From Lepidodermella squamata (Eukaryota > Animalia > Gastrotricha), in the NCBI GenBank assembly GCA_047495785.1, contig JBLDXI010000042.1:1364001-1428000 (forward strand): a stretch of 64,000 nucleotides of DNA, written 5' to 3'. Below, piece by piece: positions 1-42,621 of this stretch (positions within the stretch are counted from its first letter, which is position 1; each line of letters opens with the position of its first letter). The notes under the pieces are model-generated. The model worked only from the letters and a program-made list of their open reading frames with translations, was not told the origin of the DNA and did no database searches. A program made the position numbers and the translations under genes.

Positions 1-1536
1 CGAATTTTCTGAATTTATTCTAAATATCCCATAAGGCCTAATAACTGTTGACAGGAGGAGCGGCGATGGGTTCAGAAACAAAGCCGATCTGGCAGCGTTC
101 ACAGCATGATTGAAAAATTTAAGCGAAAATGCAGTGGAGGGTGGAGGCATATGCCCGGTTCCTGAAGATGAGGTGATTTAAGCTGGAAACCTGTTAATCG
201 ACGGCCATGAATGTTCATACAGTTCGTCGAATTTCAGCATTGAATTAGTTTTTTGCGATTTTTCTATACTTTTTGACTATTCTCAGCGATGCACCTCGAT
301 TATCAGTTTATGGCTTTCAGCATTTTTATTTCATCATGGTCGTTATAAAAATCTTAGAAAAATAATTCATCAAAATATGGAGTCAATGGTTAGGTAAATT
401 CAATTCAAGTTTTCGTCGATCGATCCTTGCCGTATTTTTCATGAATTTTTAAGATGCAGTTGGGCCGTAGTCCCTTCGGCGTTGTATCGTCCCAGCTATG
501 TCGGCGTAATGAAACCGGATTCTTATCACGTGAAATTTTACGGTAGAAATTTCAGGGACGCAGCAGGAGGTGATTAAATTGGCCGAAAATCTACGGCGGA
601 AAAACGTCACAGCGGAGATTAGCATGCAGAAAATAATCCAAACCGTTTTATTTTACTTTTACTTTAGTAAATAATTACTTTAAACTTACGTGAAACTTAC
701 GTAAAAAATGGAATGCATTTCTGTGTATTTTTCAAAATTGTAAAAATTATGCCATTTCGAGTAACCAGTAGCCTTTACGTTGCGAAATATTTTTTAGAAT
801 TATTTTTTACGTTGCGAATTTTATCATATTTTCCTAAATATACCGTATTATATTGTTAAATTTATTTTTACCACCTGGAGTTCCCTTGAGCCTTTACTAC
901 CTCGAAAATTTTATATGAAATAATGCCACCATTAGAAATTTGCAAGACTCGGCAACTTTATTATATGAATGGTTTTTTCGTTGAAAGAAAAGTTAGCATT
1001 TTTTTAGAACATTCTGCCTTAAGGTGAAATCAAGTAGATATTACATTCGAATACGCGAAAAATGTGCTATACATTTTGAGCGAGATGATAATTTAAAAGA
1101 TTTTTCGGCTTTTCGCCTAATCAACGGGCCAAGGCCATTCGCCACAAGATTAAATGTTTCAGGCATTCGTCGAATCTAGACATCTAAGTAAAAATGTAAA
1201 ATTCCCCATCATTCAAATTACTATTCTTCATGAAATTTCATAAGTTTCATGAAATTTGGCAAAAATCCGAGCGGACGCTGGCATTTTGATAGATTTAAAA
1301 TTTGGCGAATTTGCCTCGGTTGTTTATAGACCTGTGTTAGCTATTAGCTGAACTGGACCAGGTTTCAGGGATCATGAATCGCGATCGAAACGCTGGATTT
1401 TATATCAAGTTTCAATTTCAAAATTTGATCAACTTGATCAATTCCTATATTCTAGAAATTTTCAATAATACTTGGTTGTCTTTTTATGGCAATTGTCACT
1501 ATTTTCGAGCTGATCTTTCTTCTTGTTGCGGCGTGT

Positions 1537-3947
1537 ATGCTACCAACAGTCAAAGCTGATAAACGTCGAGGGCCTTATCTTGGCTGGACGTTGGGTGTCA
1601 CTAAAAAGGCGAAGACACCTCAAACTATAGAAAACATTAACCCAACCGTGGTAAATCCTTGAAGCTGGACGAAGAAGCTGTCGCTCTGGAACTATTTTCG
1701 ATGTCAGCTGGTCTGCCGAAAAATAAAAAAAGCGAGCTCTTAGCCTTGTGGAATAATTTCAAACCCGATTCAAATCTCCCAAGAGATATTCGAACATTTG
1801 AAAAGAAATTTGAATCCGACGTCGAAGTTGTTGAACATGAAGGTGGAAAATTTTTTACTCTCAGTATAGTCGATCAGCTACAGCGCATTCTCTCAAATCG
1901 AAAACTGGCTAAAATAGTGTCTATCAATCTTCAGCAGCGACAGAATGGAACACTTGCCGGTTTACAGGGTGATATTTATTCCGGCAAGAGGTATCAAGAA
2001 TTGGCCGAAAGCTTCGGGCTATCAGATAGCTTATCATTGTCGTTCAGCACTGATGGTGTCCCATTTTTCGAATCGTCCAATTTCTCTCTATGGCCTGTTT
2101 ATGCCTTATTAAACGAGTTGCCTTATATATTGCGCGCTTGTAATCCGATTTTTTGTGGAATTTGGGGCGGCCCTTCCAAGCCCAGGTCCATGAAAGAGTT
2201 TCTATTCCCTATCCTGAAAGAGATTGTACCATATGAGAATCATGGCGTACCGTGGACTGATCATGAAAATATCCAGTATTTTTCAAAACTTTTCTTATTT
2301 CCTATATGTGTCGATACGATCGCTCGTGCTCCTATTTTGGCCATGAAACAATTCAATGGCTTTAACGCTTGCCATAAATGCGATCAGAGCGGAGCTACGG
2401 TACTTGTCAATAAAAAGAAACATTTCGTTTATCGCTTCGAGGAAAGTATGACAGTCAGAGTTAGGGAAGATTTCATTCGATGCGCAAAGGATGCATTTGA
2501 GATGCAATGCGTTCAACAAGGAATTATCGGCGTTTGCGTGTTTCTTTGCCTTAGCTCCTTCAATCCTATATCGGATGTCCTCATTGATCGCATGCATTCT
2601 GCCGATCTCGGTGTAGTAAAACGCTACTTCACTACTATTATCTTCACGAAGACTCAAAAGCAGAGCCGCTTCAGCATTGTACCCAAAATTTCTCAAATCG
2701 ACTCATCTTTAAAGAAGGTTGTTTATCCGGCTGAAATTCGACGATTTCCGCGGAATCCTGACCAGCTGAGTTACTTCAAAGCTAATGACTTCCGCGCATG
2801 GCTGTATTACCTTCTTCCTCTTGTTTTATCGGCTTTTCTGAATTGGGAGAGCTTCTATCACATGATGAGCTTCCGAGAATGCATTATGCTTCTTTCGAGT
2901 AAAAATGCGGTACCTTTTATTGAAGATTGCCGCCGTAATTTGAGGCTTTTTGTTTCCGACTGGGAGAGACTTTACGGGATCCGTCACATGGTTTCTGTTG
3001 TTCATGGCATGCTTCATTTAGCTGACGATTGCGAAGCAGCTGGGCCTTTGTGGGCGACAGACCTCTATGCTTTCGAGCATTTGAATGGTGTCTTCAAGAA
3101 ATATGCTCACGGGTCACAAGTTTGTTAAATTTCGTATTCAAAAACTCATCTTTTTGATGATAACATGATACAGGCGATTTCAAAACAGATCGTCGATTCA
3201 TTCGGACGCATTCTAGCCGTGGGCAACATTCTACCTGAAGGGCTCAATGCATGTGTGCAGCTATCTGCTTCGTTGATCAAGAAGCTGAAAAGAAGAAAGC
3301 AACCAATTACTATTGATGGCTGGTTTTGCTCTCGCTGGGGCTCTCGAAATTCGTCTCTCGCAGTTAGGTTTGACACCTTCAATGCTATCCATATTATATT
3401 AGCCACTTCAAAATCGGATGTTACTAGGCCAAGTTGGATTAGAATCCATTTTATTGTATATGCTTATCGAATCATATAACCGGTCTAATTAAAGTCGATT
3501 TATTCATTTTCTTTTTCATTTTCTAATTGCAGAGAAGTAGAAGCTTTGGCCAAGATTGATGTCCTATCAAGCACTCAAAGCCAGGCTCAATTTTTCTTGT
3601 CTTGCGAAAAACATCACAAAAAGTTGACAATCGAAGCGCGGCAATCCATTCCATCTTCTCGAAGGTGTGACTATATTATCAAATTTTCAGACGATAGCCT
3701 GTTTTTCATCGAACGCATTTTCGAGTACGAATCAAGCTTATTTTTTGGCGGACGCACCTATGCTACTGATCGCCGATATTTTAACGTATATATACGCCAG
3801 CCACACCCGTCCGAATTCTTCGTCATCCGAGGATCAAATTTCCCCAACTTTAATAAAGGCGTAGCGCGTTGGAGTGCCGAGAAAAATGTCTCTCAATTGA
3901 CTTTTATTCCACTCAATTATGACAATAGTATTCAGTCGGTGTTTTAA
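1537..3947 (+). CDS. CACTA/EnSpm-type (Tnp2/Transposase_21-like) transposase, multi-exon
   Basis: Motifs STDGVPFFESSNFSLWP, CVDTIARA, FNGFNACHKC, DRMHSADLGV, HGMLHL, GPLW..YAFEH.NG. Introns about 3120-3173 and 3367-3532 join ORFs 1659, 3165 and 3546 in frame. The likely N-terminus (ATG 1537, KRRGPY) is out of frame with the 1659 ORF. Confidence 0.8.
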
Positions 3948-4312
3948 CTTTGTGAATTTCTTCGAAAAACTAGACTCCGAAAAATGAGTGAAATCAACTT
4001 TTTCGCGTAGTCTTGTGAACTTGTGACTTGTGAGTAACTTAATACTGTAAACTCGCAGTAATTTTCAAAACTGCGTGAATCGACTAAAAGCTCAATAAAA
4101 ACTGTCCAGTTACTTTCTATTTTATTTTCCACTGGCAAAAGTTGCAAAGTTTTTTGACACAGTCTAGTATTCCGTGATCCAAACCCAGTATTTTCTGCCA
4201 ATTCCAGTTAACGTGGCGCAAATGCATGCACTGGGCTGAACTTGCCAGTTTCTGGCAATTTTAACTGGAACTTCGCAGTATTTCGCAAAAAACGTGCACT
4301 TGCTGCTCAGGG
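1537..4312 (+). mobile_element. CACTA/EnSpm-superfamily DNA transposon (right part; left end not identified in window)
   Basis: Carries a Tnp2-like transposase gene. CCAGT/ACTGG-rich subterminal repeats lie at about 4100-4270. It ends ...CACTTGCTGCTCAGGG at 4312, exactly where host sequence homologous to the paralogous promoters (cagca-cataaatgatcaacc) resumes. Confidence 0.7.
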
Positions 4313-4642
4313 CAGCAACATAAATGATCAACCTAAAACTAAGAGGAAAAAAAATAAAGTTCATCGTCGTCCAGGGTTTCTCAGGGTTAATAAAGCGATT
4401 TTACCTATGATCCAAGAAAGAATTTATGAAATTCTGTTCAATTTCTGTCATTTTTGTTACCTTCTAATAACTTTTGAACATTCCTAATTCCCATGAATGC
4501 TCTAATAATTCCCTTCCGAAGAGCGGCTCGTAATCTGCAGCTGTGTTACACCACTTTATATGATAAATAAGTACATAACCTTTTATGTATTTCACCGTTT
4601 CAGTATCGAAGTCTAGTAATAACTCAAGCTCTTAAATTGAAA

Positions 4643-5609
4643 ATGGAGTATTTAGCTCTAGCGATTCTCATCGCCGCCTGTTCTGTTGTCACGGCCTGCC
4701 CAGCTACCACGACATCGACGCCCTGTCCGAATTCCGTAAGATCCGAAAGTTCATCTGGGACTTGTCCGAATGGCCAGAGCTGTCTAACCACGGCGAACCC
4801 GTGTCCAAGCGGTCAAAGTTGCCTCACCACAGCAACGACCTGCGCAACCGGCCAGAGCTGCCAGAGTACGTCAAATCCATGCCCAAGCGGCAAGAGCTGC
4901 CTCGCGCTAACGGTCTGCCCACCCATTGAGGCAGTAAGTCACTGCCTGCGACGCGAAACATGAATTATGAATCATCCCCTTATAGCCAACATTCAAGCTG
5001 TGCAAAATTCCCGAAACTTATGGGAGCGATGGCATAAAAAACACCGATGTTCAGTTCTGCACCTCGCTCGCAGCTGAATGCAACGCATACCTAACCGTCG
5101 GAGAATCCGTGAGCTTATTGCTCAGATAATGATTCATACGAGTTCCGAATGTTTGGCATTTCTTTAGGCTAGCGCGGCAACATACTCAACTTTCAAGGAG
5201 TGCTGCGCTGCTTTGACTCCTTCGACCAACATTAAGTATAACACCATTCCGGGTCAAGCAGATGGCCGGGCGGCAGTTTTGGCTTGCGTTGCAGCTGTGA
5301 CTTCAACTCCCTACGTCGTCTTCGGTACGAACATCGATGGTAGTGGCTTAGCCGCTTGCTTGAATTTCCCTCATACCTCGACCGATGATTCCCTTGTTCA
5401 AGTTACCCAAACATTGGTAAACTATTGCATTCTCAATTCCTTGAAGTTATTGTTTTGGCATTATCAAGGAACTCACCTCTGGCTCTACTTACGCAGCTGC
5501 AACACACGCGGGATGCTGCGCCCTCATCGCTAAAGTTCCCTTGACATATAAAACGGTGAGCAAAGCGATTTATGGCTCGAAGGATTTTGAGATATGCTAT
5601 AAGAGCTGA
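4643..5609 (+). CDS. Secreted Cys-rich protein with CxxGQSC repeats, copy 1 (4 exons, apparently intact)
   Basis: Signal peptide MEYLALAILIAACSVVTA and four CxxGQSC units. GT-AG introns give exons PTFKLCKIP..., ASAATYSTFKECC... and ELTSGSTY...EICYKS*, collinear with the paralogues. Confidence 0.85.
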
Positions 5610-5844
5610 TGAAAGGAAAAAGAAAATCACAATGATCAGTTATCAACCACCGGCGAACTTTAATCCCATAAATAAGGAAGACACAATTTCAACCACGACG
5701 CGAAACTTGTGTTTCACACATTAGCCGCCGATATTTTACTCAAGTGGAGTGCACAGATTTCATTAAGATGAAATAGCTACTTGTAAATTGAAATAAATAT
5801 AGAATTGTCGTCAAAAATATAGGTCGAGTCGCTATGACAATTCG

Positions 5845-7266
5845 ATATTTTACGGTATAACATTCGTAAAACGTTCATATCTGAACTCGCCGCACTCGAT
5901 TTACTCGTCGCAACTCGCCTCCGGCTCGTCACGACTCGTAAATCTCGGGCGGCTCCGTACAGATATAAACGTTTTACTCATGTCATACCATACAAATATA
6001 ACACTGTGTCTATATTTTTAACCTTGAAACACAAATCTATATTTTTTCATACTTCAAATATAGATTTGAATATGAACTATATTTCTGATCTATATCTGAA
6101 ATATAGATTCAGGTGTATCTATATTTTTGACCTGGAAAATCTATATTTTGAATATAGATGCCCATTTCCAAGCCCAATACTTCCGAGGTCTTGTAACAGC
6201 TAATTCTAACGGAAAAACACAGGGATATAGTTTTCGCAACGCAATTTATTATGAAAGAAAATGGAGAAATTCAATTTGAGAATAATTTAGACGGGGACAG
6301 CTTGGCTGCAAAAATTGGCCGTAGGAACCAGAATTTCTCAGAAAACTCCGGAAAATCGGGCAGCATTTCGTCCCCGCTGTGCATGAATTCGCAGCGATTC
6401 GTGGGTCGGATGGCGCAGAAGATCATCGAACAGGTACGGTCAGCAAGTCGTCTCCTTAGATCGATAGAACGCGCCGGGAACACTGAGCAGAAAATCCAGA
6501 AAATCGGACAGCATTTTGACCCCAATTCGCAGAAATCACCGCACCTTGAAACTTGGTTGAACTTGGAGTACTCTGCCAGCGACAGTTCCGATTCGATCAC
6601 GTTGAAAACATCGACGTACCAAACACCGTTGCGACGCGCTTATCCGAAACTGAGCCATTTTCAACAACCAGAGATGACATTCCGACGGACTGCTGTCGAC
6701 CTTCTTTCATCGCCACCAAACGTGGCAAATCGAACCAGTTTCTTCGGATTGTAAAGGCGCATGGTTTTCGCGAACGTTGATTTCGAAGGAACTAGGTTTC
6801 AGGGTTGATGGTTTATCGAACCATTCGGCTTCAATTGCGGCAGCTTTGCCAATCGGAGCAGAATTCTGGGAGCATTTGTTCGTGAAATTCGAGCAGAATT
6901 CCGGTCGGACAGAAAATCGACTTTCAAAACGAGAAGAAATTCGAACGAATGAGAAAAATGAGCGAGAATGAATAGAAAGCCATTTTTCGATGAAATTTTA
7001 AGTTGGATTTTTTATTATTTATTATTTTGCGTTGCGAAAAATATAGACACCGTGTAATATTTTACGATACAACATTCGCAGAAACCTATATTTTCGTGAA
7101 GCACTCGTATAGATCTCGTAAAACTCATTCACCTCGTGAAATCTCGTCTCCATTCGCCTGCCGGCTCGTTCCGCCTCGATTTCACTCGTTTCATTCGTTT
7201 TACTCGATCTATATTTCGTGCTTCACTCAAATATAGATTCCTACTCATGTTATATCATACAAATAT
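5845..7266. mobile_element. Non-coding element bounded by two long imperfect palindromes (candidate non-autonomous Crypton-like element)
   Basis: Hairpins at 5845-5999 and 7057-7266 have related termini (atattttacg...tacaaatat). The inner segment is flanked by the inverted repeat acactgtgtctatatttt / aaaatatagacaccgtgt. No credible protein is encoded. The class assignment is inference. Confidence 0.6.
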
Positions 7267-8780
7267 GAAATACTGTTATTGAGGATGCGGATTTTATTAA
7301 GCGTCTCTCAACCTACGAGTCAAGGGTTCAAACACAAAACATGATACCATGTTTTAAGATCTCAGTTATGATACAAAAGATGCATTGAAGATCTTTTATG
7401 ATGTTATGCCTGCTAGTCTCAACGTTAAGAGAGTACAACTAGTAGAGGTAAAAGAGAAATGGGGCTTCCAAAGATGGGCAGCTTCGACCATTTCAAGATT
7501 ATCAGTCTCAAAAGCTTGACTTAGGGCATTCTCCCCTATACTGGCGTTATATCTGAAAAAATGTTTACATTTTGATTCATTCATATTTCACCTTACGCAT
7601 ACCTATACATAATAAACGATGCAGTAGTCAGGCGTGATAAGTCTACTATTGAAAGCGATCTTCTGCCAACTTTGAATCAAGGCCTGCGTCGAAATTGCTT
7701 CCTGCGCTCTACAACACTTGTTAAACACTCACTTTTCGCCTGATAACAAAGGGCGAGAAGCGTGACTCTATCTCTCACTCGACTTGTGATTTCAACCTTC
7801 CAAAATGGCTTCAATACAAGAAGCCATAGAGTGATTCACAATGATTCAGAATGCAACTTATACACATTGCTATCTTAACTTTGGCAGAGGCAAGTTAGGA
7901 ATTGGTTTTACTCTTCAATATTGGCATATTCAAACGTTTTTGTCATCTCATTGGGATCCTAGTTTTTGTTAAGGTGAGACGGAAGGATTTTAAGATGGAA
8001 CGAGTTTGAATTGCATTACAACCCACACAGATAGTAGTAAAAGTAAAATCAGTGTAAATAACGTAAATTACGACGCCAAGGTTATGCGCAACACGTATGC
8101 AGTTTCTCTCCACACGACTGAAAACCCATACGTGGCAGCATTCTGCCACTCCTGTGTAGTGATATGATTATGAATGAACCATGAATGAAATTACGTTCAG
8201 CTGAACTTGTTTCGCATCAGCTTTCATTATTTAAGCTTATAAAGATCGAAAATAAAGTGAGCAATCGAATGGACGAAACTGAAGAAACGATAGTGGTCGG
8301 TGGTCCGGTAACGGCACTTTACCACTCCTCGCTCAGGCCGTATGCGATGTTACTGGAAATTCAACGAATTTCCATAATTCGTACAGTCGTACATTGCGCA
8401 TGTTTATTCGTTAACAAATTCGAATCGATTGACAGATGATTTCTTAGGTCTGGAGCAATATTCCTAGGAAAATATATTACTGTAGCTGAAAAAACAAAAG
8501 ATCTGTCATTATTTCTTTTCCTTCGAATTGACATCAGCGCTTGTAACATCAGAAATTCAGGTGATACAAGAGGAGACCGGGCGGAATGAAGCTCAACCGC
8601 GCTAGACACGTTCAACTCAATTAACCGCCGCATCACATGGCAGACTTTTTGCAGGCTGTAGAAAAGCACGATTGGCAGTGGCTGAAACACCCCAATTGCT
8701 CAGTTTTTTCATGAAAAAATGAGGCTGACAGTTGGTGCACAAGCTTAATTAACAAACTTGAGCTGAAGTTGATGTGAATT

Positions 8781-8811: not shown

Positions 8812-9841
8812 TAGCAGCATAAATGATCAACCCACAGCCGAGAAGAAAGAAATTATCTTAATTAAAGTTTATCCTTAACCGGCGCTCGTGTATGCTCGGA
8901 GGGTACATAAGGCGAATTTACCAGTGATCAAATCATCAACTTAATTGTTGCTTCTTTTGATACTCTTCCATTTCTGTTCTTGATTCTGCTCAGCATTCTC
9001 TGACAGTACGATAGACTCTTGTTCGAAATGAATTCGATCTTGAGTCTATCCCTTTTATCCCCGTCTTTTCTCTCATGCCCAACAATAAAAGTATTTCACC
9101 ATTACAAAACCTAGGAAGAATTTCTGCCCAGTCAAAGCTATTTAATTCATAATGGAGTATTTAGCTCTAGCGATTCTCGTCTCTGTATGTGCCGTTGTCA
9201 CAGCTTGTCCAGCTCCGACGACTTTGACGCCATCGACGCCCTGCCCAACGAATTCCGTAAGATCCGAAAGCTTATCTGTGACTTGTCCTAATGGCCAGAG
9301 CTGTCTAACCACGGCGAACCCGTGTCCAAGCGGTCAAAGTTGCCTCACCACAGCAGCGACTTGCGCAACCGGCCAGAGCTGCCAGAGTACGTCCAATCCA
9401 TGCCCAAGTGGTCAGAGCTGCCTCGCACCCACGGTCTGCCCAGCCGCAGTAAGTCTTGGCTATAAGCAGGAAACACGAACATTTATTACTTGCCTATATA
9501 GCCAGCATTCAAGCTATGCAAAGTACCAGAAACTACAGGCGGCCCTACTGTTAAGAAGACTAATATTCAGTTCTGCACCTCGCTCGCAGTAGAATGCAAC
9601 ACATACGTGAACACTGGCGTGGCTGTAAGTCTTTTGCTATGATTGCAAGTCATATCATTTTGAATTTTGAGTGTTGAAACTTCTTCAGGCTAGCGCGACA
9701 ACATATCCAACTTTCAAGGAATGCTGCGCTGCTTTGACACCTTCGACCAACATCCAGTACAACACCATTTCGGGTCAACCAAGTGGCCGGGCGACAGTTT
9801 TGGCATGTGTTGCAGCTTTAACTTCAACTCCGTACGTCATA

Positions 9842-12800
9842 TCGTTCGTGTTGCGACGTAAGAGACCTCGCTAGGCAGTACTTTCATGCTGTTTGCAATA
9901 AAATACTTGGTACTGGTATAAGCTACTTTTTATTCGTCGGTAATAGCATCATTATTGCGGCGCATCCGATGCCGAGCGGTTACAACGCCTACCAGAATGC
10001 GTACTATGCACAAACGCTTCAGACAATTTCTCCGTTATCATGGCTAAATTCTAAATATCAACCAAGTTTATCCTCTTCTTCCTTATTTCATGTTCGTTCC
10101 TTCATTCTCAAGTTCATTCTCAAGTGATACTTTTCTGTCTCTCTGTATAGTCTTGTTGAACCATGAGAGCATCTCACCACTTGTTGAAACATGACAGAGT
10201 TTGCGTTCGAAAGGGCACACTTTTTTATTGATTTTTCATTATTCCCGGAGCAACGTTTCATGCAACCCATGCAGTAATCATCACGAAAAATGCATATTAT
10301 GGAATTATGAATAGACGAGCCAATTTTTCTACTATTCAGCATTCAGCCTCTAAATCCTGAAAATGCCAAGAAAGCACTTATTACGCTATTATTTATAATC
10401 TATCTTGTGGTTTCCTTCTCCATATCCTTCTCGCAGATATCCTTCGATGTCCTTCTTAAGTTTTATAACACGACAAGCGATCACATATATTTATCACATA
10501 TTTCTCTGTTTCGATCATAGAATCAATCGCCTTCAATGTTTTATCAACTCTTTATGAGCCGTTGCGCTGTTGCACCAAACTGAACTAAAAACTTGCGCCA
10601 AGCTCGCGAAATCGCTTGAAGTAGAAAGTAGATTCGCAGCCGCATGAGGTCAATAGTAGAATCGCACAAAATTTACGAAGTTGCTTGCATTCGAGAATTG
10701 CTAGGAACGAAACTCTTTTTTGTTGTCCTTATTCGGCATGTTCAGTTCGTAAATTTAAAATAAAAGCAAGACCAACAGAAAAATGCATGACAGACAAGGC
10801 GCCGGAACAACGGGGACACGCGCTTGTCTTAGACAGTGCACGGTCTTAGATGACTTGCATCCCTGCATCCTAAGAAAGATAGCGGGTGGTCTTGGTATAA
10901 TGTCATCTGGTTAGCGATTTAGCGATCGAGTTGATTAGCAATAAACAACGATTCCGCCGTATTCGAGTAATGCTTGACATGCAACTCGATTGGCTTGATT
11001 CGTAAAAGACAAAACATGACCCACCATTCAAGTTTGGGTTTCACGAGTTTTGCGCGGACTTCTTAATGAAATGCTACGTCAAGAGCAAAATGCCACGGAC
11101 TAATATTTATCAATGAAAACAATCAAGCGCAGAAGTATAATTTACAAAGCGCATTCACTCGGTCATTTGACTGGAATCCTATCTATAAATTAGGCTATCA
11201 GGTATTCTTACGGCACTTCAAACGGATCTATTGGCGAGAATGTGCTGATTGATTGAAAGTCTAATGTGCTCTAGGGTAAAGTCGCTCAATGTGGGGACAA
11301 GTTAAGGTTTATTTATATTCGTATCATTTCTGTGAATCGCATTTAGATGAGGATGGTGTCAATAGCATCAGCATGTGGCGGCGCGCTCGCTCCTTTTGTG
11401 TGGGCTTCCGGCTCGACATTTGGGACAGCGTGCAGTTCATGATCACTGTGTCCGTTTTCGATGCAGTTTTTGCAGAAATAAATAATTTTTGCGGTCTATT
11501 AATTCATCTTTTTAACCACGTCAAATTTATGGAGCGCGCTATTCTTTCTGAAACAGAGTATTAAGCACGCAAATGTGGGGATTTTGTAGCTGGCCGCGCA
11601 CCATGCGACGCGCGTTGACCGGCTATGAACAGCAGTCAACATCCACAAGTTGTGCTTGTGCGCTGCAAATTTTAAATGAGGTATTCTGAAAGAGCATATT
11701 CGAAAGTGTTTGCTGCCAAAATTTCAAATTATTATCGATTAAAATGAGCATTATCGATCACTGCTCCGTAGTCGTTAGCGTCGTTGAATAACTCGGATTC
11801 GGGCTTGTTCGCGTCAGTTACTGACAGTTGACGGGCGATGACAAGTTTGCTTCCCCTCTTCACTCACATAAAAACTCTCCTTTTGCCTTCTTTTCTCACT
11901 ATTCATCTTTTAACTGACGTAAATAAGCCCAAATCTGAGTTATTCAACGACGCTAACGCTCCCATTTCTGTGGCTTGTTATGTTAGTTATCGTTAGTTAG
12001 TTAGCTATAGATACCCAATGGAGTATCGCCGTCATCTATTCTTGAAAATTGTTACTTCATTTCAGTTTTAAGTAATACATTTTCAGAAAACTTAAAATAC
12101 CGCTTGTTTCCTAATTGCGACACTTTAAAAACTATTCGCTAACTTCCAGAGTTTGGAGATTCTATAATTTTTCCTAGAACTTTTCTTTTCTAAAATAGTC
12201 AGTAATGATTCATTAAATTCTGAATGCGATATCTCTCGAAGCTATTAAATTATAGTAATAGTGCATCCTATTAGCTGCTGTATTAAATTTCAAATTCTGC
12301 ATTGTTGATAGGATTATTTTACTTCAAAATTTACTCGAAGTCACCTCTTTAGTAATAACTGTTTGGACATCGGATACTGATTGGGAATCGGAAATGTTAA
12401 ATTGGCGAAATTCCGGCAATAGGTCGCTACTATACTATTTGCTGAGTGCTGGCTATTTCGATATATTCAACCTGTTATCGCCATTTTTTTTGAAACAAAA
12501 TGTGATGAATTATTCTCTTGGTTTTACTTCCTTTGTTCATTTTCGATTATTTCGGTGCGTTGAAAATAAAGATGCACGGCAACGGGTCACGGCAGCTCGT
12601 TTTTGCTACCTGTGAAATCTTCAATCGAAGAATTACACAAAAGCGCGAGAGAACTTATTAAAATTCGCGAGAAAGAATTATAGAAAGGATATGCGAAGAA
12701 GCTGAATTCCTCTTTTCTCTTCAAGAGTCCAAGAACGCAAGATAGCAATCGCAGCTAATGGCAATTTTATAGCCCTTGAACCGAAGATAGTAATTTTGGA

Positions 12801-15124: not shown

Positions 15125-16145
15125 ATGGAGCTAAATACTCCATTTTGAATCAAAGAGCTTGAGTTATTCCTTGACTTCTTAAACGGTGAAATACATAAAC
15201 GGTGTAAATGTCCTCATTCATCATAAAAAGCGATATAACACAGCTGCAGATTACGACCCGTTCTTCGGAAGGGAACTAAGAGCATTCATAGAGCATTCAT
15301 GGAGAATGTTCAACAGTTTTTAACAGTGTACAGAAATGACAGAAGGTAAAGAAAATATCATAAATGAATATATTTTATTGTTATAAACAACAAAAGCCCG
15401 CTGTTATTTATAAATAACAGTTGCCATAACGACACTGGAGTAACGAGAATTGCCTTTGGATATGTGTTTTAAGGTTTAGGATTATTTTCATTTAACAGGT
15501 TCCTAGAGGAAAGAATTAAGCATCTTGCTGCTGCGATAGGCTATTTCCGAAAGGATTCGATGGAAGCCCCTTTTCTCTTTTACCTCTACTAGTAGTACTC
15601 TCTTAACGTTGAGACTATCAGGCATAACATCATAAAAGATCTCGAATCCTTCGAGATCTTTCATATTTATTTCAAGTTTCAAGCGGCTTCATCATGATGA
15701 AATCTGAGGAACCAACATTTTGAATTCTCCTCCATCTGTTCATACGTTCTCTATCTGGATAAAAGCCGACTATTGCTGATCTTAGAACAATGGCAGGGGA
15801 AGCCAATGTCAGTAAAATACCAAAGAAACATGGAACCGTAAGTTTCGCGTAAGTGTTATTAACTTACTGGAATTGTCTTCATTATTTAAGTTCGCCGGTG
15901 GTTGATAATTGGTCGTTGTGGTTTTCTTTTTCCTTTCATCAGCTCTTCAAGCATATCTCAAGATCGTTCGAGCCATAAATCGCTTTGCTCACCGTTTTAT
16001 ATGTCAAGGGAACTGTTTGGGTGACTTGAACAAGGGAATCGTCGGTAGAGGTATGAGGGAAATTCAAGCAAGCGGCTAAGCCACCACCATCGATGTTCGA
16101 ACCGAACACGACGTAGGGAGTTGAAGTCACAGCTGCAACACAGGC
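15125..16145 (-). pseudogene. Inverted, deleted fragments of a copy-1-like Cys-rich gene
   Basis: 15125-15365 is the reverse complement of the copy-1 5' flank and start (caaaatggagtatttagctc). 15939-16140 encodes TSTPYVVFG...QVTQT fused directly to VPLTYK...EICLKS*. Confidence 0.8.
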
Positions 16146-16952
16146 TGGTTCCTCAGATTTTTCATCAAGATGAAACCGCTCGAAACTTGAAATTAATAAT
16201 GGGCGGCTTCGACCATTTCAAGATTATCAGTTCTTGATTCAGGGCATCCTATCTTAATTTTAGCAAAGCTGAGTTTGGAATTGGTTTTACTCTCCAATAT
16301 TTGCTTATTTTAACATTTTCGTCATGTTATTAGTATCTTAGTTCGATTCACGATGAGAAGGAAGGATTCGGCGATGTAATTAGTTTGATTCTAATGGCAT
16401 TACAACCCACACAGCTTTGATAGTAGAAAAATCAGCGTAATAAACGTAAATTACGCCGTCAAATATATGCGCAACACGTATGCAAGTTCTCATCACACGA
16501 CGCTGCATTATGCCATTCCTGTGTAGTGATATGATTAGAGCATGAATGAAGCATGAATGATACGTTAAGCTCAATTTGTTTGGCATCATCTTTCATTATC
16601 ATTTCATAGCTTGGAGATCGAATATTAACAATTACGCGAGCAAACAAATAGATAAAATGCTACGATAGTGAGATGTCGCGTACCAACAGGTGAAAATATT
16701 GAATGTAATTGTTGGGGCCCAGACACGTAAGGAATCGGGGCTCGAGTATCGGCATTTTACAAGTCTGCGCTCGGGCCGTATGTGATGTTACTGGAAATCC
16801 TACGATTACCCTTTTTTAATTGCGCATTATTCTTGGCTAACCGATTCGCATGGAATTGTAGGATCCATGATCGATTAATATGCCGGATTAATATGCCGGA
16901 AAATATATCATTGTAGCTGAATAAACAGAGGGTCAGCCATTATTTCTGTTAT

Positions 16953-19900
16953 GGACCGATCCACGTCGCTGTCACACTTTTTGTTGAAAGTAAAATTTTG
17001 GCTAGGCTACTAAAATTATATATTTTCTTGATGCTGAGGACTTCGGCTACAATAAAATGAAAGAAAATATTCATATATCATTCGTTTGACACTGATTACG
17101 TAACTTGGAAATGAAGGTGTCAAATTAACATGATTTTCTACCTTTTTAGGCTATTTTGTAAACAGATTATCTACAAAACCATGCAACATGTGCTATTACA
17201 GTAATGTTTATGTTAATCTACAGTGTCAGAGGTGTCATCTGTCAAATTTTCACGATGTTATGATTATTTGACAAACGTCAATGCCCTGTCAAAAATTCAC
17301 TGTCAAAATTTCTCTGTCGGTGACAAAATCACCTTTCGTTCTTCCCCAAATGCTCATTTTGTGAGCTATTGAGCCAAAACATGTTTTCCAAATCCCTGAA
17401 TGAACATACTAGTGGTAGAAAATAAAATTTCAGCTGTGAAGCTTATGGAAAGAGCTGTAGACCCGTCACCGACAGAGAATCTTTACACGATGTCACGCGT
17501 TTTTAGAAATTTTTTTACTTGAAAACAATTGTAACATGTCAGCTAAAAGAACGAGGAAATGGCGCGAGAAGTTGAAGCAGGATCCAGCTAGATATGCGCA
17601 GACTCTCGCTAACGATCGTGCCTATCGTAATGAGAAAAGGAAGGAAGAGAAAGTCTCTGAAAAACGCGAGCGGCAGAAAAAGGACCGTGAACAACACCAG
17701 GCAAGCTACAACGCCAAAAAGGTAAGAGTTGAAAACTTGAATGGCCCTCTGTATAATCTAAAATATCTTTAGTTGATAAAGGAGAAAGAAGCTCAAGAAG
17801 AAGCTGAACGCCTCAAGGTAGAAGCGCAAGCGTCGGCTGTTAATGATTCTGCGTACTCATGTCGACAGCGATTCGGTCGCGACATTGCCAAGGTTATCCG
17901 CGCACTACCTGCGGATGCTCTGAAGCAACGTGCTGTTGTGAAAAAACTCGCTACGGACCAAGGGTTTTACGTCCCGCCTAAGAAATTCTACAAAGGCCGC
18001 CAGGTTTCGGATCAAGAGAAAGTCACTGTGCGGGAAATCTTTGAAGAATTCTCCAAAAATTCACCGAATCAGCGTGACATTGGAAAAGATGGAATCTTGA
18101 AGAAATTCATGGATATTACTGTGAAGGAACTGTACGGAATCTATGTTCGGCGACATGGATACCGAATGGGAAAATCTAAATTTCACAAGTTGAAACCCGA
18201 TCACATTTTGCTGAACGATCGCATCCCAAGGAATGTCTGTGTATGCGTCATCCACGAAAACATTCGTCTTCTCTGCTTGCAGCTGAACAAAATTGATAAA
18301 AAATTCCCTGTTTCCACACATGAGATGGTTGATATGGTAAGAAAATATTTAATATTTAATATGTAAATATTCTATTTATTACTTGATATTTGTGTAAGGT
18401 CACCTGCGGATCCGAGCTCAGTGAAGTGTGTGCACGCGGATTCTGTGAGAATTGCGGGATGGGCAAACTCTTGGACTTAGAAAATCGATGTTTCCCTGAA
18501 GGCGATGCTCGTTTCGACACACCGATCACTTACGAACAGTGGCAACCAACCAAAGAAAGATACATTTCGAAAAAAACAGGTTCGGCTTTCAACCCTTTTA
18601 ATCCTTTTGTTAACTGTTCAATTAAACTTATAATATTGTTTTTATTTTCAGGGGAGGAAAAAGAATGTTCGAAAATCAAGATAGTACTAATAGCAGTTTT
18701 TCTTCATCAAGCAATCGAGGACCTGAATGGAAGATTCTTGGAATTCCTCACTCACACATTCGTTAAGCGAAAACAAGCAGCTACGTTTCACCAACAGATT
18801 ACCAGTTTGCTCGAAGTGATCAAAAAGTTGTTGGGCAAGAAGCCGAACATTCGCCATATTGAAGGTTGGTCAGATGGAGCCGCGAGTCAGTTCAAGCAGC
18901 GCTTCTTTCTAGCTGCTCTAACCCTGCTATCACATGAGCTGGGCATAACCTTATCATGGAATTTCTTTGCGTCCTACCACGGCAAAGGTGCCGTGGATGG
19001 CGTTGGCGGTTTAGTCAAGTCGCGGGTTCGATCGAGGGTCAATAGCCGAATCGACGTTGTTAATGACGCGCAAAAGTTCGCATTGGTCGCCGACGAAGCC
19101 GTTCCAAAAATCGATTGTTTTTACGTTAGCCGAGATCTCATCGACCGATGCGAACCTGATGTTGGTGAAGTTAAGGGAATACCAGGGACTCAAAAACATT
19201 TCAAGTATCAGGTGATTGATCCCTATGTGTTAAGTTATTCGGCCATTTCGGAATCGAATGAATCTACTGTGCACGAGTTTCTCAGCGAAGACGCCTCACA
19301 GCGGATGCGATATCGCTCTGGAACAGCTAGCGAGGAACCAGATTCTGAGATAACATTTAACGACGTGTTGTCCAGCACCATGGTTGAACGTCCGAAATCT
19401 GCAATCGATCGTCCTAAGTCAGCGTTCAAACGCCCCGCCCCGATTCAACCACGCCCCGTCAGCTCTGCGAAGAGGCCTCAAACGGCCGTGGATTTTGATG
19501 TATCCAGTACTGATTCGGACTCGAGTGACGATATGCCACTTGGCACGAAGCGTGAATGTGCCTTATGTGAGGTCATGTGGCTTGACTGGCTCGCCAGAAA
19601 GCCACGTGGAGGCAAGAAAGCATGGCTTCAATGCCCAAGATGCCATCTCTGGTTTTGTTATGACTGCCATGGCAAGAAAAACTCGAAAAAGTTCATTTGC
19701 ACTGAGTGTAAGGAATGATTTATTTCCCTTACTAATTTCTCTGTCGGTGACAAAATTGGCTCTCTGTCGGTGACACCCTTTTTCAAGGGTCATCTCTTTG
19801 CTATGACCATTCACCCATTAAACACATGTTTTTCAATTTCTGTAAAGCATTAGCTATCTTCTGATATATAATTTTTGCTATAAACTATGATATCTGATTA

Positions 19901-21453: not shown

Positions 21454-22395
21454 ATGAAATACTTGGCTCTAGCGATTCTCTTCACCGCCTGTGGCGTAGT
21501 CACAGCTTGCCCAGCTTCGACAACTACAACGCCCTGTCCGAATTCCGTAAGATCCGATAGTTCAACTGTGACTTGTCCTAATGGCCAGAGCTGTCTCACC
21601 ACGACGAACCCGTGTCCCAGCGGGCAAAGTTGCCTCGCAGCAGCAGCGGCTTGTGCAACGGGCCAGAGCTGTCAAAGCACGTCCAATCCATGCCCGAGCG
21701 GCCAGAGCTGCCTCGCGCCCACGGTCTGCCCAGGCGCAGTAAGTCCTTACTATAAGCAAGAAAAGCGAACGTTCAAATCATCTGTATAGCCAGCATTCAA
21801 GCTTTGCAAAATACCAGAAACTTCAGGCGGCCCTACTATCAAGAAGACTGATGTTCAGTTCTGCACTTCGCTCGCAGTAGATTGCAACACATACTTTTCT
21901 ACTGGCGTGGCTGTGAGTTTATTGCTTTATTGCAATACATATCATTTTGAGTGTTGACATTTTTTCAGGTTAGTGCGGCAACGTATGCAACTTTCAAGGA
22001 TTGCTGCGCTGCTCTGACACCTTCGACCAACATCAAGTACAATGCCATTTCGGGTCAAAAATCTGGCCTGGAGCCAGTTTTGGTATGCGTTGCAGCTTTA
22101 ACTTCAACTCCCTACGTCATATCCGATGATACGAACATCAATGGTGACTACGCAACCTGCTACAATTTCCCTCATTCAGGGGGCAAAACGAGTTTTCAAG
22201 TCACCCAAACATTGGTAAAATAATACGTCGAACATTTTCAAGTTATAGGTAAACTATTTTGCCATTATCTAGGTACTCACGTCCGGCACCACTTACGCAG
22301 CTGCAACATTTGCGGAATGTTGCGCCCTTATTGCCAAAAGTCCTATTTCATTCGATACTTTGGCTAACGGTTTTGATATATGTTACCGCACATAA
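21454..22395 (+). CDS. Secreted Cys-rich CxxGQSC-repeat protein, copy 3 (4 exons, apparently intact)
   Basis: Same exon structure as copy 1; ends ...ECCALIAKSPISFDTLANGFDICYRT*. Confidence 0.85.
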
Positions 22396-24480: not shown

Positions 24481-25641
24481 TTAACACTTACATATACCCC
24501 TAGGCCAAGTATATGTTAGAGCTATATGTAATTATATGTTTACATAATTTTACATAATGGACAGTTGATTTTCACATATTGGACACTTGATTTTTTAAGG
24601 AGGAGCACATATTGGACAGTTGTCTATTGTTCAGACCCATGAAACTCAAGAAACCCAAGAAACCCGTGGAAACCAAAATAGCTTTATTATTCAAAATAAA
24701 TTGAGCCCTTCACAAAGTTGTCGCAGCCCGAAAACCGAGCAACATTCAGTCCAAATGTTGACAAATCGAGCAGCAATCGGCCCCAATGTCGTGAATACCA
24801 AACAGCATTCAGCCCCAATTTCAACAAAATCGAGCAGCATTCCGTCCAATTTTCGACAAAATCGAGCAGCATTCCGTCCAATTTTCGACAAAATCGAGCA
24901 GCAATCGCCAACATTTCGTGAGAATTGAGCAGCACTCAGCGGCAATCTTCCAGCACCCAGAACTCCACCGGGACAATCGAGACATCCAAGCAGCAGTCGT
25001 CATCAATGTTGAGAAAATCGCGCAGCATTCCTCCTCGAAATTGCCAAAACAGCGCCGTATTCGTCTTGTTTTTCGTGCCATTTCATCAGCCTTTGTTCCC
25101 GGCTCCAACTGGTTCAACGGCACTCTTTCTCGAACGGGATCGATACCATGATTGAGCTTGAGATCGACAATGACCAGATCGGCGACTAGTTGCCATGAGT
25201 CGAATTCACTCGCCAGGTTGATTTGATGAGCCGACAGTTCAAATAGCTCGAGCCATTGTGCGATTCTTCATCGTAGCAGCGTGCCAGTTTGACGCGAAGA
25301 TCCGGCGGCAAAAAAGCGAGTGAAAATCAAAACGAGAATCGACCGAATGAGCGTTTGATTTAAAAATGGCGAAAAGCTCAGTTTTTGATGAAAAATTAAG
25401 TTGGATGTTTTATTTTCCCATTTTCCATGATTTTTTAACCTTCGCAACGTGGGGGTAGGTATTTCAATGGAGCCCTGGCAATCGGTAGATGCTACTATGC
25501 CTCGGGGTATATGCAAATATTGGACTTAGAGTCGTAAATATGTTGAAAAACCTCACAAATATACAGCCTGCGGCTCGGCCATTATATGTTCGGTTTTTCA
25601 ACATATTTCCTCCTCCATGTCCAATATATACACATATTTAA
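24481..25641. mobile_element. Second non-coding hairpin-ended element related in design to 5845-7266
   Basis: Inner inverted repeat catatacccctaggc / gcctcggggtatatg, a terminal hairpin at about 25508-25637, TTAA at both ends, and internal aaatcgagcagca repeats. Confidence 0.55.
24720..24910 (+). repeat. ~32-bp tandem repeat
   Basis: aaaatcgagcagcattccgtccaattttcgac occurs as two exact copies plus degenerate neighbours. Confidence 0.8.
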
Positions 25642-26107
25642 GGCGCCTTACTTTTGCGCTTTGATGATATCATTTGGCCATGGCACGGTGCATTTCAGAA
25701 AAGCTTGGTATTTTTTGGACTTTATTTTGCGACTTTTTCAATCTGATAGGATTTGAGAAATGTGTCTTATTTTCAGGGTAACAAGAAACCTTGAATCTCA
25801 TAATAAAAGCTCACTCTCAAACAAAAAAGTGAAACATTGAAATTTTTCGTTGTTCACTGTTCACCTTTCAAGTCAAATTTGAACACTCACGTAAGCATTA
25901 AAAATTCGAATTGTCCTAACTTTCTGGAAGCGATAATCCAATAGGAGGGCCATCGCAAACCATACTTTCGGTATTTGCGAAATATACTACTGCGACATAT
26001 TGCTCGGCGAGGCCTGCAAAACTTCACTCGAACGAATGCGTATCGATATATCTGCGTATCGATTTTCGAATTCTAAGATTTGTTAAACATATTATTGAAC
26101 CGAACAA

Positions 26108-26794
26108 ATGGCGAGCACGACTCTGCAAGCTAAACTGCTTAAAATGGCTGAAGACGAGGCAATTTGTGACTTGGTTAAGAAACTCGGATTTTCAGTGGCT
26201 TCGATGCTGAGTGACCTGATCTCCATCGAATCTGAAAGGAAAGACGAGATAATCACGGTAACCAAACAATATCAACAATTTGTTGACGAAGTCAAAGAAG
26301 ATACTGCTTATGCGGCTGATAACGTGATCGACTCTGTCAAACAAGCGTCCTATGAGATCAGGAATGGCGGATGCCTGATCACCGCCGTCCACGAGGCCCT
26401 TTCCCAACGGGACAGGGCGAACAACATCATTATCTCCGGACTGGAAGCGCCAGACGGTAATACCGTCATAGCCTTATCTGACCTGGTTGCAAATCTCGGC
26501 ATCCTGAACTTCGACGTCAAAGAACGCATAATACGAACGAACCTGATCACGAGGGAAAACCAAGATCCTAAAATTATTGTGCAGCTGAAATATGCCTCCG
26601 ACAAACGTCTGTTTCTGGAAAAAGCCCCCCAACTTCGCAAAAAAGCTGGGTGGGAGTCTGTGTTCATTAGCAAGGACCTGACCCCTGCTCAAGCTAAGAT
26701 CGAGTTTGAAAAACGGGAGCACAACAGACGCCAACGATCGACTGGTGCGCCGGTAAAGAAAAACCTGGTACCTCCTCAACCGACATCACCTTAG
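26108..26794 (+). CDS. LINE ORF1 (coiled coil plus RRM-like region)
   Basis: RANNIIISGL, PKIIVQL and VFISKDLTP motifs typical of CR1/L2 ORF1. Confidence 0.85.
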   Translation: MASTTLQAKLLKMAEDEAICDLVKKLGFSVASMLSDLISIESERKDEIITVTKQYQQFVDEVKEDTAYAADNVIDSVKQASYEIRNGGCLITAVHEALSQRDRANNIIISGLEAPDGNTVIALSDLVANLGILNFDVKERIIRTNLITRENQDPKIIVQLKYASDKRLFLEKAPQLRKKAGWESVFISKDLTPAQAKIEFEKREHNRRQRSTGAPVKKNLVPPQPTSP

Positions 26795-29641
26795 GAACCT
26801 GGCGCCCTGTCCGTTGCTGACAAGAAAAACAGTAATGAAACTATTAACTTCCCATGCTACTTAATCAACACTAGACAGCTAACAAATCCGTATAAAGTTT
26901 CTCTGTTATTACTCAATCTCCTAACTACAAATGTAATCTTTGCCTTTATAACTGAAACGTGGTACAATGATGATTTCAATTCTTCCTTCTTCGAAAATAA
27001 TGGATATAAGGTTCATAGAGCTGACAGAACAGACCGCGAACGTGGTGGATCCATGCTACTCATTCACAAATCTTACGAATCCACCCTTGTAGCACAAACC
27101 TCGATTAAAGGATACTGTGAGATTGTTATATGCGACGTCCTCATTAATGATATAAAGTTACGTCTGTGTTGCACTTATAAATCTCCTAGCGCCGATAGCA
27201 CTGTTACGGAAGAAATGTGTAGCTTTATTGAAGAGCATCTAACCGATACTTTGTTTGTACTAGCCGGTGACTTCAACTTTCCGGACATCAAGTGGAATAA
27301 CCTCACTCACTGTGGCGGAGGGAAAGAACAAATGTTTATCAATCTTGTTAATGATATTAATTCCAGTCAACTTGCCACGGAACCAAACGGACCTGAACAT
27401 AAAAACATTCTTAATCTTATCATTACAAATAACCCTATGTCAATCAACAATATTGTTACTGACAAATCATTCGAGCCTACTGATCATTGTACAGTTAAAT
27501 TTTCTATTAATCTCAGCGGTGTTACATCTCTTAATAATGATGACAATAGATACATCGATGACTATCTCAACGCTGACTATGACAAAATATCGAAATTACT
27601 TCTGAGTTATGATTGGGACGATCTACTATCAACGTGCAATGATGTGAATGAACAATATGCGCTTTTCTTATCAATATATACAGATATTTGTGATAAATGC
27701 ATTGTAAAAAAACTTGTCAAAAGCAAATACCGTTTACCATGGTGCAATCGCGAGCTACATAGATTAGTTAGACGGAGAGACCGAGCCTGGTCGAAGTATA
27801 CTCGTTGCGGCAAGAAAAATGACGATCTAAATAAATATTGCAAAATCTCTCGTAAGACTATAGCTTTAAATAACTCTCTAAGAGAGTCATATGAAACACA
27901 ACTAGCTAACACTAATAATATGAAAAAACTGTGTAAATATGTGAATAACCATATGAAATTTAAATCTAGAATACCTTCAATACTTGTTGACGGCGAGACT
28001 ATCTGTGATCCCTTGAAAAAAGCTGAATTATTTGCGAAATTCTTCAAATCTCACTTTACTCTTGACGATGGCTGTAAATTAAATGTACAAAACAAACCAT
28101 GCGTTGTAAATGACTTATATTTCTCAGAACCCTCAATTATTGAAGCTCTTAAGAAAATAAAAATAAACTCTCCAGCTGGCCCTGATCTTATAAATCCATA
28201 CTTTGTTAGCAAAACTGTAAATGCTCTAGCTAAACCTTTATCTATAATCTTTAACTCTAGCTATTCTTCTGGTTCTGTTCCATTCTTCTGGAAATTAGCC
28301 AATGTAACGCCTGTATTTAAAAAAGGCTCACCTAATCTTGTTGACAATTATAGACCAATTAGCATTACCTCTCTACCTTGCCGTATCATGGAATCAATTA
28401 TAAGAAAACAATGGATAAGAGTATTACTTTATGAAAAAATAATATCCTACGAGCAGTTTGGTTTTATATCTGAAAAATCGTGTGAAACGCAACTATTAGA
28501 CTGTTTAAATAAATGGTGCGATCTTGTAGACAGAGGAATGACACTACACTGTATATACTTCGATCTTTCTAAAGCCTTCGATACGGTCCCACACGCTAAA
28601 CTTCTCGATGTCTTAAAATCTTTCAATATTAATGAATGTTTATATAATTGGATATCATCTTTTCTAACAGGACGTAAATTTCGCGTAAAAATACATAATT
28701 GCTTCTCTGAATTGTACGATGTGACCAGCGGTGTCCCACAAGGGAGTGTCTTGGGCCCCTTGCTATTTTTATTGTATATAAATGACTTACCAAAATATAT
28801 CAAATTCAGCATCATTCGTCTATTCGCCGATGATATTAAACTATTTCCTCATACCTCCTTAACTCCTATTGATCAAAGCACCAAACGTTTTAGCTATGAA
28901 TATATCCAAAGAGACGTTGATAATATTGTAAACTATCTCAAAGAACGCCAGCTTATTTTGAACCCGGACAAATGTGTTGTTTTGAAAATTAATACTACTG
29001 AATGTGTAAATATTGTAATCGGACAAAAATATCTAGAATGTGTGGATGAAATTAAAGATCTGGGTGTTATTGTTGACAGCCGTCTGACTTTCTCCAGCCA
29101 ATGTGCCAAAACTGTTGCTAAAGCCAGAAAAATATGCGGTATGATTTTACGCTCGTTCCAAACGAAGAAAACAGAAATACTAATGAAAGCCTTTGACATT
29201 TATGTGCTACCCATCTTACTTTATTGTAGTACTGTTTGGTCTCCAAGACTAATTGGCGACCAAAAGTTATTGGAAGGTGTGCAAAAAACGTTTACCTGGC
29301 GCGTGATGAAAACGCATGACTACGAAAAAAGACTTCTAAAACTTAGCCGCTTAACTATTATTCAGCGTCACTTGGTTAGAGATATATGTGTAACTAATGA
29401 TATATTGAAAGACAATGTTAATCTAGATACGAAATGTTTTTTCGATGTTAAAAAATCAAACTATGATACACGTAGCCATAAATATTTTCTCCTGATGCGT
29501 AAATCTCATCTTGATGTGCTATTTCATTTCTTTAGCTTTAGAGTTATAAATAATTGGAACAAATTGCCAGCCTTTATTATAGATATTAATGATCGACTAA
29601 TCTTTAAAAACCATATAAAAAATATTATTACAAAAATATAA
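26795..29641 (+). CDS. LINE ORF2: AP endonuclease plus reverse transcriptase
   Basis: The frame is open from directly after the ORF1 TAG. Motifs LINTR, ITETW, GDFNFP, TDH, NYRPIS, DLSKAFD, GVPQGSVLGP, LFADD, KDLGV. Confidence 0.95.
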   Translation, partial: EPGALSVADKKNSNETINFPCYLINTRQLTNPYKVSLLLLNLLTTNVIFAFITETWYNDDFNSSFFENNGYKVHRADRTDRERGGSMLLIHKSYESTLVAQTSIKGYCEIVICDVLINDIKLRLCCTYKSPSADSTVTEEMCSFIEEHLTDTLFVLAGDFNFPDIKWNNLTHCGGGKEQMFINLVNDINSSQLATEPNGPEHKNILNLIITNNPMSINNIVTDKSFEPTDHCTVKFSINLSGVTSLNNDDNRYIDDYLNADYDKISKLLLSYDWDDLLSTCNDVNEQYALFLSIYTDICDKCIVKKLVKSKYRLPWCNRELHRLVRRRDRAWSKYTRCGKKNDDLNKYCKISRKTIALNNSLRESYETQLANTNNMKKLCKYVNNHMKFKSRIPSILVDGETICDPLKKAELFAKFFKSHFTLDDGCKLNVQNKPCVVNDLYFSEPSIIEALKKIKINSPAGPDLINPYFVSKTVNALAKPLSIIFNSSYSSGSVPFFWKLANVTPVFKKGSPNLVDNYRPISITSLPCRIMESIIRKQWIRVLLYEKIISYEQFGFISEKSCETQLLDCLNKWCDLVDRGMTLHCIYFDLSKAFDTVPHAKLLDVLKSFNINECLYNWISSFLTGRKFRVKIHNCFSELYDVTSGVPQGSVLGPLLFLLYINDLPKYIKFSIIRLFADDIKLFPHTSLTPIDQSTKRFSYEYIQRDVDNIVNYLKERQLILNPDKCVVLKINTTECVNIVIGQKYLECVDEIKDLGVIVDSRLTFSSQCAKTVAKARKICGMILRSFQTKKTEILMKAFDIYVLPILLYCSTVWSPRLIGDQKLLEGVQKTFTWRVMKTHDYEKRLLKLSRLTIIQRHLVRDICVTNDILKDNVNLDTKCFFDVKKSNYDTRSHKYFLLMRKSHLDVLFHFFSFRVINNWNKLPAFIIDINDRLIFKNHIKNIITKI

Positions 29642-42473: not shown

Positions 42474-42621
42474 TTATTGTTATTATATACCTACCTGTTT
42501 TACGGCGTCTAATGCACATGTAAAGTGCGCTCTTTATTATTTTGTTTATTACCCGTTTCTTGGTAATAAAGTGCGTGGTCGGCTCATCTCAATGAAAGAA
42601 ACGCGGGTATTATTAAGCCTG

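Follow-up and report, generated by a model that had tools for sequence, protein, structure and literature searches.

Hairpin-ended tandem units in the gastrotrich Lepidodermella squamata: possible Crypton-like elements with a strand-specific terminal fold

Introduction

What kind of mobile element ends in a long hairpin that folds well on only one of the two DNA strands? This question is raised by a locus in the genome of the gastrotrich Lepidodermella squamata (GenBank assembly GCA_047495785.1, contig JBLDXI010000042.1, positions 1,364,001 to 1,428,000). The stretch of 64,000 nucleotides that was analyzed is called the window here, and all positions refer to it. A sequence-only reading of positions 5845 to 7266 had described two interrupted palindromes as the two ends of one element and had suggested that they are folded recognition sites for a recombinase or replication protein, perhaps of a Crypton-like element. 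To our knowledge, recombination of a folded single strand by tyrosine recombinases has been shown only for bacteria, in integrons and the cholera phage.

Cryptons carry a short direct repeat at both ends that is alike in all copies and of which one copy comes from the target (PMC8969392; PMC3212892). Their standing model is excision followed by re-insertion, but the only active Cryptons observed gain copies, and the excision model does not explain this gain (PMC9977147). Terminal repeats are said to be lacking in the animal Cryptons described so far, and a hairpin is not mentioned in the 2026 CryptonA paper. In bacteria, the strand of attC sites that is recombined is favored by G-T pairs and purines (PMC5027507), and in CTXphi a single strand is folded such that it serves as a duplex site.

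Results

Genomic setting. The window contains genes for class C GPCRs, M13 peptidases, and 2OG-Fe(II) oxygenases, as well as a LINE and DNA transposons. The prolyl-4-hydroxylase-like 2OG-Fe(II) oxygenase genes form a tandem cluster (41068-46095 and 50990-52854), and a single-ORF fatty-acid/sterol hydroxylase (55120-56154) has homologues that are mostly unnamed metagenome and protist sequences, the best at 68%. A Transposase_21 (CACTA-type) ORF lies at 1659-3128, and transposase-like ORFs with a PHD-like cysteine cluster at the end and no Pfam match lie at 17773-19718. Secreted proteins with 13-residue cysteine-rich repeats are encoded by duplicated genes at 4637-4963, 9152-9592, 21454-21789, and 36826-37302, with an inverted partial copy at about 15.1-16.1 kb. 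The insertion studied here is situated just downstream of one member of this family.

Two units of one design. The region consists of two units, A and B, and each hairpin is the right end of its own unit (Table 1), so the earlier view of two hairpins as the two ends of one element had to be given up. The left boundary had been placed at 5845 and is in fact at 5795, 50 bp outside. No TSD had been visible; a conserved 6-bp direct repeat, AAATAT, is present at all three junctions. In each unit, a short arm comes after the core and recurs in inverted orientation just before the hairpin. The six bases that close this subterminal repeat also form the foot of the hairpin, and the core stands at the end of the hairpin's opposite arm. 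As a result, the internal block and the joined ends of the same element are complementary to each other; the two match at 37/52 positions in A, 41/52 in B, and 37/54 in a third unit, C. One-strand circles of A, B, and C all fold into rods in which the core is the central duplex, and the minus strand folds better. In every unit the core has a bulge next to it, on the side of the hairpin (1 nt in H1 and H2, 2 nt in the hairpin of C, H3). The left arm of A has no match to the internal block of B beyond the core. The nonamer AAATATAGA has 10 matches in the window, where 1.07 are expected, and all are within 5795-7237. An inner inverted repeat of B (6226-6261 / 7010-7045, 78%) flanks a GC-richer interior and overlaps the subterminal repeat.

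Table 1. Positions of the units and their parts in the window
Feature	Position	Strand	Basis
Unit A, about 205 bp: left inverted repeat, 44-bp leader, H1	5795..5999	-	loose contig ends; depth; found alone in many copies
Unit B, 1.27 kb, non-coding interior, H2 at end	5994..7266	-	interior depth about 1,400-5,000; ORF searches
Hairpin H1	5845..5999	-	registers and DNA folding
Hairpin H2	7057..7266	-	registers and DNA folding
Core hexamer AAATAT, left junction	5795..5800	+	single copy in empty paralog
Core hexamer AAATAT, one copy common to right end of A and left end of B	5994..5999	+	junction reading
Core hexamer AAATAT, right junction	7261..7266	+	depth drops to flank level in bin 7264-7327
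Left terminal inverted repeat of A, 14/15 complementary to 5836-5850	5795..5809	+	
Subterminal inverted repeat of A, its final 6 nt forming the base of H1	5836..5850	+	
Left terminal inverted repeat of B, 24/26 complementary to 7037-7062; self-palindromic	5994..6019	+	
Subterminal inverted repeat of B, its final 6 nt forming the base of H2	7037..7062	+	
Cluster of AAATATAGA motifs in both orientations, extending the core; candidate protein-binding array	6009..6148	.	
Promoter-like block common to B and C, directed away from the hairpin; putative promoter	6930..7016	-	
Unit C, more diverged, same design, core ACATAT	24490..25637	-	layout, apex motif, shared block
Hairpin H3 of unit C	25509..25637	-	2 tandem GA/GA, GCA triloop
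Empty site	15659..15706	-	sequence match to insertion flanks

The hairpins fold better on the minus strand. On this strand, H1, with its register read base by base, has 57 Watson-Crick pairs, 5 G-T pairs, 10 G-A pairs that form 5 tandem GA/GA steps, and 3 other mismatches. Its loop is a GGA triloop (5920-5922), and a bulged G at 5993 adjoins the core. H2, read in the same way, has 72 Watson-Crick pairs, 5 G-T pairs, 22 G-A pairs including 9 tandem GA/GA steps, and a single A-C mismatch, together with one GGA/GGA 3x3 loop, an apical GGCA loop (7159-7162), and a bulged G at 7260. The sequence-only reading had noticed TC facing TC about 5 and 9 times, as well as minus-strand G-T wobbles, GNA/GNNA loops, and a CGAG-type context of the G-A pairs, and these observations were all confirmed; the context is YGAR in 27 of the 28 GA steps of H1 and H2 (p about 1e-7 at 50:50). 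Tandem sheared G-A pairs in this context are a stable DNA motif established by NMR (PMC10085684), as are GNA loops closed by a sheared pair, which are known from Streptomyces telomere overhangs (PMC5449611). The spacing of the GA/GA steps is only partly phased, as 8 of the 12 intervals are in the proposed range of 9-11 bp and the remaining ones are outside it. The stems had been said to differ in sequence while keeping the same code; this is true for the inner stems alone, the outer ~25 bp being homologous direct repeats.

The mismatches are strongly biased. Across H1, H2, and H3, 49 favor the minus strand and 2 the plus strand, and when each tandem is counted once the ratio is 33:2 (p 2e-8). 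G-T exceeds A-C by 12:1, and the three hairpins have 16 TC/TC steps. Three other inverted repeats in the window, examined as controls, show mixed mismatch types. Two ordinary MITE-like inverted repeats that served as controls (11773-11958 and 32024-32299) have strand-symmetric mismatches. In a strand-aware hairpin scan of the window, only the matches at 5920, 7160, and 25570 clearly exceed the shuffled maximum (50-58) with a strand bias. A match at 61640 is borderline and falls within a GPCR ORF, and at an apex-like match at 11404 there is no hairpin.

Folding with DNA parameters gave minus/plus energies of -41.1/-33.9 kcal/mol for H1 and -41.2/-29.9 kcal/mol for H2, which makes the minus strand more stable by 7 and 11 kcal/mol, respectively. 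Both palindromes are far beyond chance (z about -6 to -9), with minus-strand z values of -9.5 for H1 and -8.9 for H2. With RNA parameters, which also favor the minus strand, the values were -85/-58 and -92/-57. Because DNA folding parameters give no credit to sheared pairs, the energy gap between the strands is understated.

A third unit. Unit C has the apex motif of A and B and shares the promoter-like block with B. Its core differs from that of A and B, so that the core varies by family (AAATAT or ACATAT) yet is always identical at both ends of a unit. C has TT flanks on both sides, a self-palindromic left end, and internal 32-bp tandem repeats, and its place of insertion is similar, downstream of a different gene from the cysteine-rich family. 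It is a partial independent check only, because it was found after the design had been derived from A and B. A LINE with an open ORF1 and an endonuclease/RT ORF2 (26099-29641) is located just downstream of C.

An empty site and other copies. An inverted duplicate of the host locus provides a paralogous empty site, which has one AAATAT and 17 identical bases across the junction (42/51, E 5e-8), where the filled site has AAATAT at 5795, 5994, and 7261. This evidence comes from one paralog, which diverges again just right of the junction. The empty target site is held in a 39-bp inverted repeat (15664-15702 / 16160-16198). Paralogs at 13 and 22 kb were rejected as empty sites, their junctions being too diverged.

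The copy survey used contigs only, those of four runs (X1 to X4), placed on 5600-7500. Contig depth climbs at 5795 and drops at about 7266, and over unit A it is 10,000-60,000, compared to 46 in the single-copy flank. Point depth divided by 46 gives rough copy numbers of 200-1,300 for the H1 region, 30-40 for the interior, and 50-300 for H2, which are orders of magnitude because summed contig depth overcounts. Loose ends before 5795 occur in X1 (nine contigs with unrelated flanks), X3, and X4, and loose ends behind 6000 occur in X1 (six contigs) and X4. Since nine X1 contigs begin at 5795 and six end at 6000, the stretch 5795-5999 exists alone, and because the flanks of these copies are unrelated while their limits (5795 and about 6000) agree, the hexamer is present at both ends genome-wide. 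Contigs of X3 and X4 run across the junction between A and B, which may also move as one unit. Hybrid hairpins are formed where H1 is joined to H2 (5897 to 7099; 5905, 5917, and 5929 to 7242), and loose ends in X2 and X3 reveal yet another family of hairpins, in which the ATATTT base and the first TC are retained. X2, in which the element is also present, is possibly an RNA run. No circle junction or single-stranded form was seen in the contigs of the four runs.

Variation among the copies can be read against the fold. At 7153, T>C (13,684 of 13,718 depth) turns the sole A-C of H2 into a Watson-Crick pair, so the A-C is private to the present copy. Among the changes listed, C>T at 5876 and at 5930 replaces G-T by A-T pairs, and 5959 A>T repairs a T-T. 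Two contig reads have a sixth TC/TC in H1, at 5871/5971. Changes at 5893, 5910, and 5931, also among those listed, would break pairs unless their partners changed too. These single-site changes, listed without a covariation analysis, lean towards a conserved fold. Selection on structure, as the sequence-only reading had proposed, is well supported: the mismatch bias, the YGAR context, the GNA loop, and the variants in other copies that restore or add pairs all point to selection for a fold on one strand.

Searches for an enzyme or relatives. A search of the window ORFs for recombinase motifs and Pfam domains turned up neither a recombinase nor an HUH gene, within the element or elsewhere in the window, and no integrase is present in the window. 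A, B, and C have no coding remnant. The interior frames of B and C had no Pfam, Atlas, or representative match, the single match being a tandem-repeat ORF, and indels run through the 167-aa ORF of B in other copies. No copies of the element were found in JGI metagenomes or IMG/VR, and seven GTDB matches were chance 18-20-mers. The contig with the best homologue (68% identical) of a window gene has no such hairpin. Rfam gave no match at the gathering score (best E 0.65), and a sigma-70 promoter scan was at chance level. Hairpin ends of the parvovirus or telomere type were discarded as candidates, as both hairpins are on the same strand and there is no viral ORF. We found no published description of such ends; this search covered the literature only, so a Repbase or Dfam consensus may exist.

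Discussion

The hairpin-ended units are real and strongly non-random. Each has a 6-bp core at both junctions, one copy of which is that of the target. In each, the joined ends are complementary to an internal block, and the hairpin at the terminus is stable on one strand only. We consider it somewhat more probable than the alternatives taken together (about 0.55) that A, B, and C are non-autonomous relatives of Crypton-like tyrosine-recombinase elements that move through a folded single strand, like attC or CTXphi. A Crypton-like element is the best fit because the 6-bp direct repeat is shared with the empty site. This repeat is short and alike across copies (AAATAT, or ACATAT in C), and a single core is found in one independent empty site and at the A|B junction. 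Tyrosine recombinases need homology in an overlap of 6 to 8 bp, which the short shared core fits. The idea of folded recombinase sites of a Crypton-like element, first put forward for this locus from the sequence alone, survives as the best fit, although the element and the window hold no recombinase or HUH gene. The assignment to Cryptons is made from the end structure; while that structure is seen directly, the recombinase, the circle of single-stranded DNA, and the exchange of one strand are inferred.

The units share with Cryptons (CryptonF/S ends; CryptonF-1_cRei) a terminal direct repeat of 5-6 bp, the lack of a true TSD, many non-autonomous derivatives, and a rising copy number. Published Cryptons are without inverted repeats or hairpins, whereas here an asymmetric inverted repeat (15-26 bp) and a one-strand hairpin of 130-210 nt are present and there is no recombinase ORF. 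Because of these inverted repeats of 15-26 bp, we file the units as Crypton-like and not as a described Crypton family. As in integron attC sites and CTXphi, a hairpin ends each tandem unit, the core at its base is common to the neighbor, a bulged base lies by the core, and G-T pairs and purines are biased to one strand. In contrast to these bacterial systems, the host is an animal genome, the core is ATATTT/AAATAT, there is no GTTRRRY/RYYYAAC core, L or R box, attI, or dif, and the stems are 2-3 times longer and made of repeated sheared GA/GA blocks.

If the units do move as a folded single strand, the following course can be proposed. The minus strand, which would be the putative sense, non-template strand, may be exposed at a replication fork or during transcription. 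The hairpin would nucleate at the GNA loop and zip through the GA/GA blocks to the core, while the left end would pair with the subterminal repeat. A recombinase acting in trans would then exchange the minus strand between the two cores and release a single-stranded circle, and the donor element would survive on the other strand after replication. The released circle would fold into a rod, with the core duplex between the hairpin stem and the inverted-repeat stem, and a single strand exchange would recombine this rod with a copy of the core in the chromosome, to be resolved by replication. The GA/GA and G-T pairs may both choose the strand and stop the double-stranded element from being a perfect palindrome. 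The broader proposal is that there is a eukaryotic lineage of tyrosine-recombinase transposons that recombine a folded single strand and are copied out and pasted in replicatively, that the sheared GA/GA stems are a strand-selection code, and that the ICR-like block links Crypton to DIRS ends. To this we give a chance of a little less than even.

The main rival is that the units are non-autonomous rolling-circle elements of the Helitron2/Helentron kind, in which the HUH protein RepHel nicks one end and peels off a strand, and the asymmetric inverted repeats and the hairpin mark the stop. We regard this as unlikely, but it accounts for several features. Helitron2 ends are laid out in the same way, with a terminal repeat and a subterminal one immediately before a 3' hairpin, B and C resemble Helitron2 5' hairpins and mite subTIRs in their self-palindromic left ends, and unit C has its TT flanks. 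High copy number, tandem units, and single-strand folding are also compatible with it, and HINE and DINE-1 elements share the layout, the palindromic left end, the lack of a TSD, and the tandem units. A 5' hairpin using the terminal repeat is found in B and C and is absent from A. Helitron2 and Helentron elements have repeats of 8-15 bp, a palindrome of 5-10 bp, and a 3' repeat 20-60 bp from the end, whereas the repeats here are 15-26 bp long, the 3' repeat is 130-210 nt from the end, and the hairpin is far longer. Moreover, they target TT or T-rich sites, whereas TT does not flank A or B and the target has a family-specific 6-bp match to the element junction.

Less probable again is a tyrosine-recombinase element that recombines as double-stranded DNA, the hairpin serving for cruciform extrusion, as an RNA structure, or as a replication or primase signal, or the phased CTCG being an array for protein binding on the duplex. 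Recombination of the duplex is expected to leave an identical end signature, CTCG does recur every 9-11 bp, RNA parameters also favor the minus strand, and the possibly-RNA run X2 holds the element. A duplex array needs neither complementary spacers nor the excess of G-T over A-C. As for RNA structure, GNA triloops and GGA/GGA loops are DNA motifs, and Rfam offers no match. The promoter-like block is downstream of the hairpin, and therefore its transcript would not contain the hairpin.

It is improbable that the units are non-autonomous DIRS-like retroelements, in which the internal block would act as an ICR, holding the two ends of a single-stranded cDNA together as a circle for integration by the DIRS recombinase. 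An internal block complementary to both joined termini is the definition of a DIRS ICR, as seen in DIRS-1, and DIRS elements use single-stranded cDNA and short target homology. However, the units have no long inverted terminal repeats, no RT remnant, and no RT, RH, or YR ORFs, and DIRS cores are trinucleotides, whereas the core here has 6 bp. In addition, the putative promoter would miss the hairpin end, and the resulting cDNA would be the poorly folding strand. Finally, palindromic MITEs are common and the two in the window fold well on both strands, but that the hairpins are a decayed perfect palindrome of such a MITE with no selected structure is highly improbable, since decay is strand-symmetric, as the control repeats show, each TC/TC takes two transversions, and the 49:2 bias refutes it unless a strand-specific mutation makes tandem GA/GA.

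Some further systems resemble the units in part. Streptomyces telomere overhangs and hairpins of CGAG blocks share the GNA loops closed by sheared G-A pairs and the tandem sheared pairs in YGAR, but they occur at chromosome ends, where Tap/Tpg bind, or as a promoter repeat, and not at the ends of mobile elements. Replitrons also have 6-bp terminal direct repeats, copy-and-paste movement, and a hairpin near one end; unlike here, both repeats belong to the element, the target is RG, the hairpin is only short, and the hosts are plants, algae, and protists. The vertebrate Eulor5/6 repeats are classed as Crypton-derived and are probably self-complementary.

The units indicate that repeated sheared G-A pairs, known for the most part from NMR models and the telomeres of bacteria, are under natural selection in animal chromosomal DNA. 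Should the units turn out to be Helitron2-like, they would still show an undescribed end structure for rolling-circle elements. The ends allow a cheap and concrete test, as the 205-nt unit can be made as an oligonucleotide for which the strand, core, and fold are predicted, and they are of specialist interest because they make the Crypton mechanism testable. If the Crypton-like reading is true, replicative copy-out and paste-in through the folded minus strand would account for the copy gain of active Cryptons.
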